Source: Salpingoeca rosetta (taxonomy: Eukaryota; Protista; Choanoflagellata). Taken from it: DNA of 64,000 bases. This document shows, piece after piece, positions 13,643-22,600 of the stretch. The stretch covers positions 892,719 to 956,718 of the forward strand of contig JAWQFM010000007.1 in assembly GCA_033442325.1 (NCBI GenBank). The letters are read 5' to 3'. Each line of letters begins with the position of its first letter. Position 1 is the stretch's first letter. The notes under the pieces were generated by a model. That model was not told where the DNA came from. It saw only the letters and a program-made list of their open reading frames with translations, and ran no database searches. The position numbers and the translations under genes are program-made.

Positions 13643-16600
13643 ATGTGCTTTCGCATTGCATCGGCGCTCATGGTGGTGCTGCTTGTGGTGCTGATATTCC
13701 ACACCAGCCCCATCACCGCCAACCACGACCACACGGGCGTGGTGCGGTTGCCGCTTGATCTTGAGCTGTATGAGGACGTGGACTACGTTGCACGCGTGGA
13801 CCCCAACAACGAGTATGCGCAGTCGTGTGTACACGATGTTGACGACGGCCGCTACGACTTCAGACCCATAAGCGGGAGCTACGTCGTCAGTAGCAAGGCA
13901 GACAAGAGCCAATTCCGAATCAAGTGCGCGCGCTGCATTTGTTTGTACCCATGTCTTGTATGCACGTTGATGAACATCGAACCGGCGTCTGTGTGCTGTG
14001 CTTGAGGCGTCGGACGTGCGCGCGCGTTGTGTATCTGTGTAAGGGCTGGACGTCAACACAAGCTTGCCGCCTTCATATGCATGTATGCAACCACCTGTTG
14101 TGTGTCACCTCAACATATCTCACCAGCTCACGCTGTCATATGTGCGTGCTCGCTGGCTTGTGTTGGCATTCGTGGTTGTTTGTGTCTGCCCTTGTATGTT
14201 TACGCTTGTGTGCGTGTGTGCACAGCCTGTGTGTTCCTCCTAAGGAATGCAACGGCCAGAACTCCACCACAATCTGCCGGCAGAAACGGCTCGCTCGTGA
14301 AGCTGGCATCGAAGGTACACCACCAAATGCAAGCCATGCAACCACTTGACATGACCTCAGTTGTGTCTGCATAGAGACACGTGCCTTTGTCTCTGTGTGC
14401 CTGTGCCTGTGTTTGCCCATCATCGTCTGTGCTGGGTCCGTGTTATTCCTTCATGACCACAAGCACTGTGTGGCTCCAACTGTACTTGCCCTTCGATCAT
14501 TATCATCTTTACTGCAACAACTCTGCAAACATGCATGCGTGCATGCGTGCATTCATTGCGCTGACACTCGCATATATGCATGTGTTGCAACACTGGTGAT
14601 GCAGCCATCATTGAGGTGTCGATGGGATCACAACCCCTGTGGGACTCTGCGTTCAAGCCCAGCGACTATTCCCTCCGCGTTCCATACACAGACGTGCGTC
14701 CCGCGTGGTGCTCAATGGTGCTCAGTGGTGCTGCAAGTTCTCATGTCCTTGCCTGCGCCTGTCATGAACAGTTTATGCTGAAGTGCTGAACCCTTCCTTT
14801 CTCCTCATGCACTCATCCTCATGTACTCATGTACTCAAACATTTACACGCTCACGTGCTCGCGTGCTCGCGTGCTTCCGTGCTGCTCGCTGTTGATCAGG
14901 GATCATTTGGCAAGACGGTGCAGGACATTCAAAGCGCCTTGACACTGGCTGAATTGTTTGCGCACAGCGAGCTCTCAACGAACACGGTGAGTGTCCACGT
15001 GCATAACGCTCCAACCCCGCTCGCATTGGCACACAGCCACACACTTGCATGTGTGTGCGTGTGTGTGTGTCGGCTGTACTCATCACCCGTGCACCTGTCA
15101 CCGCCGTGCTCACTCTGTCACAACTGCTGCGGTGCACAGGCTGCTGCCATTGATGCCGCCGTGGACGAGCTGCGACGCCACGCAACACAATCCATCCCCA
15201 TGACGGTCCGTGCACATGCGAGCTAACCCTACGTGTGTCGCGTGTGTCTGTGTGTCGCGTGTACGTGGAAACCCTGCTCTTCTCCCTCTCACATGCTCAT
15301 TATACACGCGTACACACACGCACATACTCAACGCTTGCACGCCATTCACATGCGGCCATGGTTTGGTTGGCGATGCTTCTGGCCGTAGGTTGTGGACTTT
15401 TCGTGCGATCCGAGCGTGACTGGCCGGCCAGAGTTTGTCTATCTTGGACCCATTCCCTTGTCCCATGGTACGCACGTTCTCCTTTCCGTTAGGGGGATAT
15501 TCTGTGCACGGTTTGATTGGATTGGGCAGCACAAACACAACACAAACATCAACATGCACACAATCCATAACTCATGCGCACACACACACACACACACACA
15601 ACACACAACGTGGACATACACGACCTGACGCACGCGCCGTGTACGTGTGTGCAATGCTCAGGCACGTGGTATGGTGTGGAGCCAACACAGGACCTACCGG
15701 CTGACCTCACTGCGGCATACGGGCTGATGATCGCGCACGCGTGCGTGTGCCCAAATGCCACATGCCATCTGCCAGACCCTCCAAGGTGTGTGTGTGTGTG
15801 TGTGTGTGTGTGTGTGTGTGTGTGTGTGTGTGTGTGTGTGTGTGTGTGTGTTTGTGTGTGTGTGTGTGTGAATGAGCTTTGCGCTTGGTGTTTTCCTTGT
15901 TCGCTCGCATGTTCATTCACGTTGCGTGTAGTTGACATGCATCACGCCATTCTTGAGAGCCCCATTACACCCCCCGTCACTACACCCAAGCACTGACCAA
16001 ATGTGCGGATGTTTGTTCCGCTTCACAGAAAACCGCCCCGCCCCTGCCACGAGGAGTGGGATCGATACATCTTCAAGAACATCCCTGCCATCGCCATTGT
16101 GCGCGCGAACACGTGACCTCCTCTTGTGTGTGTGTGTGTGTGTGTGTGTGTGTGTGTGTGTGTGTGTGTGTGTGTGTGTGTGTGTGTGTGTGTGTGTGTG
16201 TGTNNNNNNNNNNNNNNNNNNNNNNNNNNNNNNNNNNNNNNNNNNNNNNNNNNNNNNNNNNNNNNNNNNNNNNNNNNNNNNNNNNNNNNNNNNNNNNNNN
16301 NNNCTCTATGAAAAGCGGCGTGGTGCCTCGTGCATCCACATCTTCAACGGCCGCGTCAACATCGCAATGCCCATCAACTTTCTCACAATCAGGAGAAAGT
16401 ACACATGTTGTTGTAGGACATTCAAAGCGCGTGTGTGTGCGTGTGTGTGCGTGTGTGTGTGTGGGTGTGCTTGCGCAATACTGTTGGTGGTTTGCGTGTG
16501 TGGTGTTTAGTGTTCTCAAGCCCGCCAACTTGCTACGGCTGCTCACCTCGGCAACAACAACACTCCTACAACCTGTTTTGACAGCCGATTTGTGACGGCG

Positions 16601-19600: not shown

Positions 19601-22600
19601 ACAACAACTCCCGCCTCCCCTGTTTCTCCTCGTGTACTTGTGTGTGCGTGGTTCTGTCACACAGGGGTCATGGCGTCACCGTCTGCAATCCTGTCAGAGT
19701 GGCTGCCACGGGGCGACATTGCGTCCCTGCTGTCCATTGTTCCCGGCGTTGAGCTGCGCTTCCACATTGGCACGTCGTGCAAGACAACAGACATCATCCG
19801 CCAGGCTGTCTACATCTCCTTCATGGTCTCCGGCATCCTCGCATGCGTCGTCCACTTGGGGTAAGAATTTGCTCTTGTTGTTGTGTGTGTGTGTTTGTGT
19901 ATTAATTTGTGTGTGGTTGAGGTCGTGAGTGGCGTTGTGTGTGCGATTGTGAGTGGCGTTGTGTGTGCGATTGTGAGTGGCGTTGTGTGTGTGTGTGTGT
20001 AGGTGTGTGAGTGGATATATTTCGTCATATTGCTGGAGACGACCCGATCGCATGCTAATCGTGTGGTGAACCTCATTTGCACTTGCTCTTGTTGCTATTC
20101 AGGTACCTGTGGCACATGCTGTTCTGTTACAAGAAACACATTGGCCGGCTCTGTCGGGGTGACAAGTCGTTCCTGCCGCCCATCCGCAAGTGCGTGTCAC
20201 ACACACACAACACACACACACACACAAAGTGCTCTGCTATGGCTTATCTTGTTTGCAACAGCGAAGACGTCTCAATCATGGCCTCTCACCCATGCATCCA
20301 CGCACGCACACGCGTTGACAGGCTGAATTCGTCTGCTGGCATTGTGGATGCGCTCAAGTATGCCGGGTTCCAGACAGCGTATCTGCTGAGCGGGTGGATT
20401 ATCAACGCGTTTCTCCTGTGCGCATTCTGCCTATTCCTCACGCTGTCCAGCGTGCTGCCGGCGCTGCATGTGTACGATGACTGGTTCTGGCAACCGTGGG
20501 TGCTGCACAAGATGTACCCCATTGCCATTGGTCTCGCCTTCTACTTCATCCAGGTGCGCATGTGTGCGCATGTGTGTGTGTTGTTGTGTTGTGCGCGTAA
20601 TTCGTCGGCGGCATTTGAGAATCATAGACATCACGTGCTGCTGCTGTATTGTGCCCTTGTGCTTTGTGCAGACTGCTGATTCACCAACACATCCGAAACT
20701 GTGATCCCACATTCATACGTGTGCTCACACAATCCCTTCAAACCTTCTCTTCGCACACGCACACACACACGCGCCCTTTGTGATGTCATCGACAGTACAT
20801 TGCTGTGCGCTGCATCTTCCAGACGCGCTCGGCCTCGTACATGATCATCCACCAGCGGTTCTTCCACAACTTTGACTTCTTCGTGTTCTTCATCAACATC
20901 TTTGTTGGTCTCTATTCGTTTGTGTGCCGGTTCTTGCTCAACGTCGGCGTGGGTCTGCTGTGGATCAGCCGCCTTGACAAGTCCATGCTCCCGCGCGGGT
21001 ACGAGTTTATCGACCCAGGCTACCGCACATATGTCGGCTTCCTGTTGCTGGACTACCACTACTGCAACCCGAGTGTGGTCACCTTCTCCAACCTCCTCAA
21101 TTCTCACGCGAAGAAGCGGCGGCGCCAGCGAAGGCGGTTCATTGAAGAGGTCTGTCTGTCTGTGTCTATGTGTGCCTGTGTATTAGTGTGTGTATTTGTG
21201 TGTCTGTCCGTGTGTCTGTGTCTGTCTATCTGTCTATCTGTCTGTCTGTCTGTCTATCTGTCTATCTGTCTATCTATCTGTCTATCTATCTGTCTATCTG
21301 TCTGTCTGTCTGTCTGTCTGTGAGTGGAACTGTACGTATGCGTTGGTCGGTGTCTGTGAGTGCATGCCTCACTCAAGTAACTGTACACGTGTGCACATGT
21401 CTGTCAAGAGAAAGCAGTTTTATTTGCATGTTGCCACTGCTAGGCTGCAGCTCACCGTGACCACACACGCACCATCACCAACACTACCACTGACTCGCAC
21501 GTGCAACAAACAACCTGCGTCCCTGCAGTACATTGAGTCTGGCGGCGGCCTTGCCATTACGCGCCGGTCGGTCAACATCACCGATACCAGCGACGCGGCG
21601 CTGTTTGACTTTGACGAAGACGAAGAGGACGCCATGGATTATATGGGCGGCTGCGACGAGCGCTCGCGCTCAAGGAACAAGAAGAAGAACAAGGCCGCGA
21701 ATCCGCCGCCCGTACAGTACGACTACACCGTGCCAAACTACGCGTTCACCTCAAGCAGCGAAGACAACGCTGGGCACCAGCGCGGTGCCAGCAGCAGCAG
21801 TGACTTGGAGTACACGCACACGTGGGACCCCCACTCCCCGCTGCTCGACATGGCAGACTCCACACGCGGCCACCAGCGCCAAGTGAGCACAGCATCCACA
21901 TCGTCCATTCTCTGGTCGGCCACGGCCATGCTGACCAACGCGTTCTTTGGCTACGCATACACGCCGCACCAGCTTCGCCTGCGCCAGCAAGCAGAGCAGC
22001 TGTGGGAGGTTCGCGTCGCACACGCGCGCAAGCGTCGCCGCGTGCGCACGCGCTGGCACTTGGCAGTGACGCTGCTGCACAACCCGCAGCTGCGCGAGGA
22101 GAGGAAGGATACGGGCAGGCGGCACCGGCAGGACACGACGCTGAGGCGCCGCCGATCGCAGATCTGGCACATTCAGCAAGCAAAGCACGAGAGCATTCTG
22201 CGCCTGCAGCAGGAAGAGGAGGAGGAACGCGAGAGAGAAGAAGACAGGGAGGAGCATGAGGTCTATGTGGAGGTGCAGGGATCCAGGAAAGGCAAGCTTG
22301 CGCGTGACGATTCTCTCTTGAGCGACTATCTCGACGACGACGGTGACGACGACGGTGATGGTGGTGCTGGCAATGGAGGTCATGGAAGCCGCGGAGATGG
22401 TGGTCACGGTGGTCGCAGCATCAGTGCATTTGCTGTTGACGACGACGACGACGACGACGACGCTGACAGCGTGAGCAGCGTTGTGATTCGCTACGTGGAC
22501 AGTGAAGACGAGGAACGGGAATGGCTGAGCATGAAGCCATCCAATATGACTGACGCATCCTCTTCCTCGGATACCACTGGTGCACAGCGCAGCGCAACCA

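Follow-up and report, generated by a model that had tools for sequence, protein, structure and literature searches.

A locus on the + strand of a 64,000 nt stretch of Salpingoeca rosetta DNA (hereafter the window, whose positions serve as coordinates throughout) carries a Cys-containing N-terminal domain ahead of a STRA6-type membrane core, with an assembly gap of 100 N lying between the exons of the two. This raises the question of whether both halves belong to one protein, and, if so, what fold the domain adopts and what it may contribute to the core. The locus is, with near certainty, one gene of 23 exons (13643-25383), encoding ~2184 aa and expressed as one spliced mRNA. In order, its product comprises a signal peptide, a ~205 aa extracellular domain, a short Cys/Pro stalk, a STRA6-family core, predicted to be multi-pass, beginning at the first transmembrane helix (TM1), a BP2-like helix and a ~1090 aa tail. 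The extracellular domain very probably has the beta-barrel fold of mannose-6-phosphate receptor homology (MRH) domains, as judged from the modelled structure of an ortholog. The best overall explanation, to which a probability of roughly 55 % can be attached, is that of a single gene whose MRH ectodomain would act as a built-in capture module for the STRA6 core. A first-pass annotation of the window, which correctly took the host to be a unicellular holozoan, ended the gene at 22110; it in fact continues for a further ~3.3 kb, to 25383.

The window as a whole is microsatellite-rich eukaryotic DNA of ~55 % G+C. The eight N-terminal exons (13643-16098), which the first-pass annotation had joined in frame, do indeed have GT-AG borders throughout, and splice into an in-frame product of 295 aa carrying the motifs quoted at that time, in the order of a hydrophobic signal-like start, the Cys-containing domain and then '...CHEEWDRYIFKNIPAIAI'. 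On the 3′ side of the gap, 15 more GT-AG exons form an uninterrupted frame of 1884 aa with its stop at 25383. Between them, at 16099-16303, lies intron 8, formed by the 100-N gap together with a (GT)n run; neither its 3′ splice site nor the initial 15 nt of exon 9 can be seen, as the gap conceals both. RNA-like Logan contigs were placed on 13600-18760 as a test of this gap, and two runs from two studies (X4 and X7) each provided an intron-less contig of 4060 nt covering the whole exon chain from 13600 to ~22800, with RNA contig sequence also reaching at least 48 nt upstream of 13600. Both contigs link 16100 to 16304 by way of 13 extra letters, such that the hidden start of exon 9 comprises GT (16099-16100) followed by CTTGCTGCTGATG, i.e. 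15 nt, or five in-frame codons reading VLLLM. As the spliced contigs cross the gap, and the hidden 15 nt are in frame, the two halves belong to one mRNA. TM1 reads NIPAIAI-VLLLM-LYEKRR, and is split half and half by the gap.

Three other joints were dropped by the placement tool at microsatellites (15785>16029, 16643>16979 and 17846>18032), and each fits exactly upon subtraction of contig coordinates (92, 179 and 116 nt, respectively). One transcript is therefore found across 15785-16029-16304, by arithmetic at the first joint and directly at that over the gap. The earlier proposal that the STRA6 exons continue the same reading beyond the gap is thus upheld by the spliced contigs and their in-frame 15 nt, and also by four full-length orthologs that are colinear through the exon 8/9 junction with no extra residues there. 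Strand-specific raw RNA reads from a third study (X16) support ten N-terminal and core joints, in a single read orientation. With the DNA-like contigs (X1) interrupted by the (GT)n runs, the gap is still open at the genomic level; its sequence is expected to hold the rest of the (GT)n intron, AG, and then GTCTTGCTGCTGATG followed by CTCTATG. Long microsatellites, of the types (GT)n, (ACAT)n, (CTTG)n, (CA)n/(CCA)n, (CAA)n and (CTGT)n, occupy nearly every intron of the gene (e.g. 15786-15870, 16120-16203, 16770-16940, 17880-17940, 18820-18990, 19530-19610 and 21160-21320), and the assembly gap, as well as every break in the DNA contigs, coincides with such runs.

It is extremely improbable that a secreted MRH gene and a STRA6 gene merely adjoin one another at the assembly gap. 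Such an arrangement draws what support it has from the concealment of the 3′ splice site by the gap, and from the raw reads of X16, none of which lies over the gap joint (depth there 0.2-1). It is opposed by the in-frame exon-exon joint over the gap in contigs from two studies, by orthologs from transcriptomes and the Monosiga brevicollis genome, each of which is one protein sharing this junction sequence, and by the division of the two TM1 halves between exons 8 and 9. Two separate genes were accordingly rejected on the strength of the spliced joint and the single-protein orthologs, and a chance open frame was likewise rejected.

The RNA does not agree with the assembly at every position beside the gap, as six letters in 93 differ within 16304-16398. 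Two of these alter the protein, 16340 A>C (Ile to Leu) and 16364 G>C (Ala to Pro), and in both cases the RNA version matches the residue conserved amongst orthologs; the assembly beside the gap is therefore slightly wrong or represents another allele. An odd joint in the same area, 16396>16583 (AA..AC), would become a canonical GT-AG intron if one more base differed at 16398, and this is the simplest account of it.

With regard to the second half of the protein, its assignment as a STRA6-type core is secure. Exon 22 (20796-21149), the best-conserved stretch of the core, on its own matches the RBP_receptor family (PF14752, profile 454-553) with 82.3 bits (E 4.4e-23), well beyond the curated cut-off of 25 bits, and weaker pieces come from two other exons. 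A six-frame genome search with PF14752 gives 80.6 bits at the locus, and the orthologs score 155-232 bits. The N terminus of STRA6 proteins lies outside, and the chain forms nine transmembrane helices besides one intramembrane helix; a hydropathy scan alone finds TM1 at residues 285-303 and ~8 further hydrophobic segments up to residue 830. Because of the predicted signal peptide, the N terminus of the protein described herein is also placed outside the cell. Downstream of the core, residues 1067-1093 (22027-22107) form a putative calmodulin-binding BP2-like helix (R.RWHLAVTLLHNPQL), with a BP2-type motif of RW.LA.TLLHNP.L that lies at the end of the PF14752 match (profile 563-604) and, on visual comparison, matches the BP2 peptides that PMC12714816 gives for sheep and zebrafish. 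This helix is situated ~150 aa past the end of the membrane core, and the S. rosetta paralogs carry the same motif. The tail that follows (22110-25383, ~1090 aa) is of low complexity, with poly-Q, poly-D and Ser-rich stretches, and looks disordered. A homolog search with the last exon retrieved only a C-terminal fragment (P0001, Logan contig L029) from an AT-rich relative, which has in common with this exon the BP2 region, an island at 24190-24258 and the last 14 residues; since these islands are shared, the long tail is considered real coding sequence.

The identity of the ectodomain was approached by structure, using the ortholog P0006 of Hartaetosiga balthica (residues 95-345; phmmer E 4e-68 to the window protein) in place of the S. 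rosetta protein itself, and AlphaFold2 without templates on a family alignment of 10 sequences. The resulting model (pLDDT 62.9, pTM 0.64) is a beta-barrel broken by two helices (115-134 and 140-157). When compared with the PDB using Foldseek, the best 30 rows are all CD-MPR or CI-MPR/IGF2R domains, with E from 4e-5. An exhaustive VIA search of 48,161 chains places an IGF2R domain first (Z 14.5, root-mean-square deviation of 2.3 Å over 131 residues, 20 % identity), and the top 20 are without exception MRH domains, from CI-MPR, CD-MPR, Elapor1, OS-9, Yos9, glucosidase II beta, GNPTG and XTP3B; the rows that follow, at ~Z 7, match the helical hairpin alone. The MRH-like ectodomain which the first-pass annotation proposed at residues ~55-270 is thereby recovered on the ortholog model, and is here placed at residues ~58-265, spread over exons 1-7 (13814-15765).

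Profile comparisons point the same way. The family alignment, including the window protein, was compared by hhalign with seven MRH repeats cut from a CI-MPR-like gene of S. rosetta, giving a local score of 34.4 (P 1.4e-4) and a global alignment of 131 columns (P 4.4e-5), at a probability of 42-53 %, against scores of 0.6-11.9 for reversed and 20 column-shuffled controls. A series of motifs is collinear with the CI-MPR repeats, namely C..YD..L, F.INLC, C....aC, LG, Y..G, T.V.F.C....G.P.F and Y........C. As a weak lead, a language-model search returned CIMR as the nearest named clusters (0.76-0.80). The CI-MPR-like gene itself is located elsewhere in the genome (G000:C9:1021364-1029997; L007-L011, L014) and has at least eight CIMR repeats in one open frame of 1451 aa; further CIMR, Man-6-P_recep and ATG27 loci exist as well, including on G000:C23.

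Several results weigh against an MRH assignment. Pfam searches with single N-terminal exons and six full-length orthologs returned RBP_receptor only, with no MRH match at E ≤ 1; six-frame genome searches with CIMR, Man-6-P_recep and ATG27 found many MPR-like loci elsewhere and none in the window at E ≤ 10; and the ectodomain profile retrieved only noise from all PDB sequences (E ≥ 0.8). To these can be added that the structure model derives from an ortholog and a 10-sequence alignment and is of moderate confidence, that the hhalign probability is only 42-53 %, and that the ectodomain has an odd number of cysteines (9). A homolog search with the ectodomain region of P0006 recovered P0006 itself and nothing else. 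Of the checks suggested in the first-pass annotation, AlphaFold and Foldseek on the ortholog thus led to MRH, and the MRH Pfam models did not match; the ectodomain is too divergent for membership by any current sequence model tried. A beta-sandwich that came to resemble MRH by convergence, rather than by descent, would account for the failure of every sequence-to-profile search and for the moderate confidence of the model. It would not explain why Z 14.5 stands well above a background of 7-8 and covers the whole barrel, why the Cys pattern and motifs occur in the same order as in CI-MPR repeats, or why the profile-profile score far exceeds the shuffled controls, and convergence is consequently regarded as improbable. 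Homology of the ectodomain to MRH domains is likely.

The domain is distributed across the N-terminal exons as follows. The first ATG of the open frame begins the predicted signal peptide (residues 1-26; 13643-13720), the initial 19 residues of which have a Kyte-Doolittle value of 2.69. Exon 1 (13643-13923) holds this peptide, a linker and the first predicted MRH strands (C..YDFRPISGSY..FRIN), and its GT..AG joint to exon 2 (13923>14226) is in frame and seen in X4, X7 and the raw reads of X16. Exon 2 (14226-14314) reads LC..P..CN....IC(R)Q and, by its hhalign columns, corresponds to the MRH 'invC ... C......aCQ' region; its downstream joint, 14314>14605 (reported as 14312>14603 and corrected by +2), has seven raw reads and two contigs. 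The middle MRH strands (SMG..., LRVPYTD) are assigned by alignment to exon 3 (14605-14693; RNA joint 14693>14900). Exons 4 (14900-14986; RNA joint 14986>15140) and 5 (15140-15205; RNA joint 15205>15389) encode the first and second helix of the hairpin insert, respectively, as judged from the ortholog model. Exon 6 (15389-15467; RNA joint 15467>15662) supplies the strand 'VVDFSCDPSVTGRPEF', which hhalign pairs with R.T.I.F.C......G.P.F. Exon 7 (15662-15785) contains a long loop, the last putative MRH strand (AAYGLMIAHACVC), an N-glycosylation site (NAT) and the start of the Cys/Pro stalk, and is covered by a contig piece at 15661-15778, with its joint to 16029 fitting the 92-nt arithmetic. Exon 8 (16029-16098) adds the stalk Cys (RPCHEEW) and the first half of TM1 (NIPAIAI), as supported by in-frame splicing, RNA contigs, ortholog alignment and hydropathy.

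Beyond the gap, the visible part of exon 9 (16304-16398) comprises the end of TM1 (LYEKRR) and a PINFL motif, and rests on RNA contigs and ortholog alignment. It is followed by exon 10 (16585-16643; GT-AG, in frame, contig arithmetic), exon 11 (16979-17052; GT-AG, in frame, with five raw reads at 17052>17186), exon 12 (17186-17229; RNA joint 17229>17400), exon 13 (17400-17493; RNA joint 17493>17730) and exon 14 (17730-17846; GT-AG frame and RNA contigs), the last two of which each hold a transmembrane segment by hydropathy. Exons 15 (18032-18066) and 16 (18240-18317) have RNA joints at 18066>18240 and 18317>18574, and a contig piece runs through exon 17 (18574-18732) to 18733, where its loose end reads the start of exon 18 (19142-19317), a GT-AG exon in frame with a transmembrane segment by hydropathy. 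Exons 19 (19665-19860; transmembrane segment) and 20 (20103-20189) are GT-AG and in frame, and exon 21 (20322-20553; transmembrane segments) gives a weak RBP_receptor match (PF14752 E 6.8e-4, profile 366-413). After exon 22, the final exon (exon 23, 21529-25383) is one open frame encoding the end of the core, the BP2-like helix, the low-complexity cytoplasmic tail and the stop, and is covered by the RNA contig to ~22800 by arithmetic.

In the alignment, the insert of ~45-47 aa is a two-helix hairpin situated between the 'Y..G' strand and the 'R.T.I.F.C' strand. Almost the entire hairpin derives from two symmetric phase 0-0 exons (14900-14986 and 15140-15205), one helix each. In mannose-6-phosphate receptors, this position is taken by a loop with phosphate-binding residues and one disulfide, as known from CD-MPR; the hairpin thus appears to have replaced both the phosphate-binding loop and its disulfide. 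Of the eight cysteine columns of CI-MPR, six are occupied, by alignment alone, by Cys62, 96, 102, 111 and 210, together with either 258 or 260; the missing pair is that which flanks the phosphate loop, and three of the four canonical CI-MPR disulfides would therefore be kept.

The sugar site is altered to a similar degree. MRH proteins that function as lectins are defined by a Gln-Arg-Glu-Tyr tetrad, which is not a requirement of the fold. The canonical Gln column has Arg in S. rosetta, and R, K, Q, H or N over the orthologs, whilst at the canonical Arg column S. rosetta has Pro, and Arg is confined to two orthologs (P0010 and P0009). M. brevicollis has Gln at the canonical Gln position, and no single ortholog has both Gln and Arg. 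The Glu column cannot be placed because of the long extra loop, and the Tyr is kept in four of five. Retention of Gln and Tyr had been claimed in the first-pass annotation; the Tyr stands, but the Gln noted there lies one residue after the canonical column and is variable amongst orthologs. It should be weighed against all of these placements that they come from a low-confidence profile alignment rather than a superposition. As only the Tyr of the sugar-binding residues is aligned, and with the phosphate loop seemingly replaced, the ligand is probably not mannose-6-phosphate, in keeping with the earlier suspicion, and a site that binds this sugar is unlikely. An MRH lectin with an intact mannose-6-phosphate site was rejected.

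This leaves the alternative that the ectodomain is a working lectin of another kind, in the manner of OS-9, GIIbeta, GNPTG and the mannose-6-phosphate receptors, recognising glycans displayed by a secreted glycoprotein carrier, by prey or matrix, or by a sorting partner. It would in that case serve glycoconjugate recognition or transporter trafficking, not direct lipid capture. All fold matches are indeed glycan-binding or glycan-related MRH proteins, the Tyr is kept, Arg survives in P0010 and P0009 and the canonical Gln in M. brevicollis, and the bona fide CI-MPR repeats of S. rosetta imply that a mannose-6-phosphate system exists in this organism. Nevertheless, the canonical Gln and Arg positions of S. 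rosetta itself are Arg and Pro, no ortholog keeps both residues, and a helical hairpin stands in place of the phosphate-binding loop; most CI-MPR repeats, moreover, are not lectins. A lectin role is hence judged unlikely, and a capture module for something other than mannose-6-phosphate is preferred.

To assess how widely the architecture occurs, a library of 1.84 billion proteins was searched with the conserved exon 22, and the best 150 of 645 matches were compared with the spliced N-terminal 300 aa. Four full-length orthologs have the same ectodomain ahead of RBP_receptor, with all cysteines and the helical segment conserved: P0006 of H. balthica (EP00055_P008605; local E 4e-68), P0003 of M. 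brevicollis (XP_001747066.1, MONBRDRAFT_26692; 1e-48), P0010 from a Logan assembly (3e-43) and P0009 of Salpingoeca urceolata (EP00051_P027753; 3e-30). Iteration adds a more distant group, consisting of one metagenomic protein, PTSG_04386 of S. rosetta itself, and proteins of Microstomoeca roanoka, S. helianthica and S. infusionum, and an acanthoecid, Diaphanoeca grandis, joins them through a comparison of profiles (P 3.5e-6). The choanoflagellate orthologs, near and distant, are 'hypothetical' or unnamed in their sources, and their tails differ in length. The architecture defines a family found in at least eight choanoflagellate species, with several paralogs. Among the hits examined with a complete N terminus, at least 285 aa before TM1 are present only in choanoflagellates, with one fish gene model, in which an apolipoprotein is fused on, as the sole exception. 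The same stretch measures 37-140 aa in homologs from cnidarians, sponges, hemichordates and vertebrates, which agrees with the first-pass statement that vertebrate STRA6 lacks such an ectodomain. A review holds that STRA6 is absent from invertebrates (PMC5133064); this is out of date, as invertebrate STRA6-like proteins match RBP_receptor. Six proteins from sponges, cnidarians and hemichordates, to which NCBI gives the name 'STRA6-like' (P0019, P0029, P0080, P0120, P0122 and P0014), do so with E 1e-79 to 1e-100.

The S. rosetta genome has four RBP_receptor loci. The three STRA6-like genes beyond that in the window, L027 (G000:C8:966000-975999, ~5150-9815), L026 (G000:C12:1114000-1123999, ~4280-8706) and L028 (G000:C11), each encode a signal peptide and an ectodomain ending in H-x-C-x-C before TM1. 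In the C8 and C12 genes the ectodomain and much of the core are held in single long exons. Their ectodomains are weakly similar to that of the window gene on C7 (hhalign P 0.007 and 0.0015, respectively) and have no orthologs among the best 150 hits. The gene at L028 has its motif in common with PTSG_04386 (P0138) of S. rosetta.

These comparisons also bear on whether the ectodomain captures any ligand at all. It could instead be structural or regulatory, acting as a lid, as a dimerisation or stabilising module, or as an aid to folding and export of the core. Putatively conserved disulfides and a rigid Cys/Pro stalk that runs straight into TM1 would suit such a purpose, as would an amphipathic helical hairpin that could pair across a STRA6 dimer, and the much greater divergence of the paralog ectodomains is what would be expected if no specific ligand were read. 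On the other hand, the whole domain is conserved from craspedid to acanthoecid choanoflagellates, which speaks for a constrained surface, and a purely structural or regulatory ectodomain seems rather unlikely.

Returning to capture, the ectodomain is placed outside the cell by its predicted signal peptide together with the N-out topology of STRA6 proteins, and its direct tether to TM1 should bring it above the outer cleft of the core. Vertebrate STRA6 docks RBP4 at this outer cleft. The short Cys/Pro stalk would hold the ectodomain by TM1, next to the cleft, where it might serve as a built-in docking or capture module for a ligand other than mannose-6-phosphate, in place of the soluble RBP4 of vertebrates. 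Hydrophobic cargo could then be passed to the core, and released into the membrane under Ca2+/calmodulin control. Ligand capture by the ectodomain is offered tentatively, at somewhat less than even odds; the lipid or glycoconjugate receptor-transporter put forward in the first-pass annotation is likewise conjectural. The leading candidate cargo would be a prey-derived retinoid or carotenoid product. This is made plausible by the light response of the choanoflagellate Choanoeca flexa, which is mediated by RhoPDE and needs exogenous retinal or carotenoid (10.1101/661009), the same preprint describing an S. rosetta RhoPDE; a retinoid cargo nonetheless remains doubtful.

Compared with vertebrate STRA6 and RBPR2 (STRA6L), the window protein has a homologous core above the Pfam threshold, an N terminus predicted to be outside and a C-terminal BP2 motif. 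It differs in its predicted cleaved signal peptide, in the ~260 aa that precede TM1 (as opposed to ~40-50 aa in shorter animal homologs), in the ~150 aa between core and BP2, and in its ~1090 aa tail. A zebrafish STRA6-calmodulin structure has been solved by cryogenic electron microscopy, according to the citations of Chen et al. 2016 in PMC5133064 and PMC12714816. RBP4 is a vertebrate protein, RBP being reported absent outside vertebrates (PMC5133064), and the ligand in choanoflagellates must therefore differ. With CI-MPR/IGF2R (CIMR, PF00878) and CD-MPR (Man-6-P_recep, PF02157), the ectodomain shares a flattened beta-barrel (Z 11.6-14.5 on the ortholog model), the order of motifs and, by alignment, three of four disulfide positions. 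It is unlike them in falling below all sequence-model thresholds, in having a 47-aa hairpin for the phosphate loop and its disulfide, in the long extra loop before the last strand, in not keeping the Gln, Arg and Glu of the sugar site, and in its attachment to a multi-pass transporter, not a single-pass sorting receptor. Domain 11 of IGF2R, which binds the protein IGF2, is an MRH barrel with a non-sugar ligand and is among the best structural matches, although its binding loops differ from those of the window ectodomain. Closest of all are the choanoflagellate orthologs, which have the same architecture, cysteine pattern, helical insert and TM1 junction, some of them keeping Arg or Gln at the sugar site.

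A search of full-text literature found no paper on an MRH-STRA6 architecture, just as the first-pass annotation had known of no description. As the literature searched never names MRH and STRA6 together, the attachment of an MRH barrel to a multi-pass transporter seems not to have been described before. In its widest and most speculative form, even more doubtful than the retinoid cargo itself, the proposal would be that the ancestor of choanoflagellates and animals had a STRA6 with a built-in MRH capture domain, that animals lost it and vertebrates substituted RBP4, and that living choanoflagellates import prey-derived retinoids or carotenoid products for their rhodopsin-phosphodiesterase light sensors.

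The architecture of the protein is solid, and the biology it suggests is moderately surprising. So far, STRA6 has been understood solely in vertebrates, where it is the receptor for vitamin A bound to RBP4, and at stake are the role of its many non-vertebrate homologs and its function prior to RBP4. Since the layout is common to choanoflagellates and not to animals, it provides a testable model of what STRA6 may have done before the vertebrate carrier protein. The concrete hypothesis is that ligand capture would be built into the transporter by means of a classical cargo-receptor fold with a rebuilt sugar site. S. rosetta is already kept in culture and worked on in laboratories, so that the hypothesis is open to test there, and, as one choanoflagellate light response depends on exogenous retinal, a plausible physiological read-out may be at hand.

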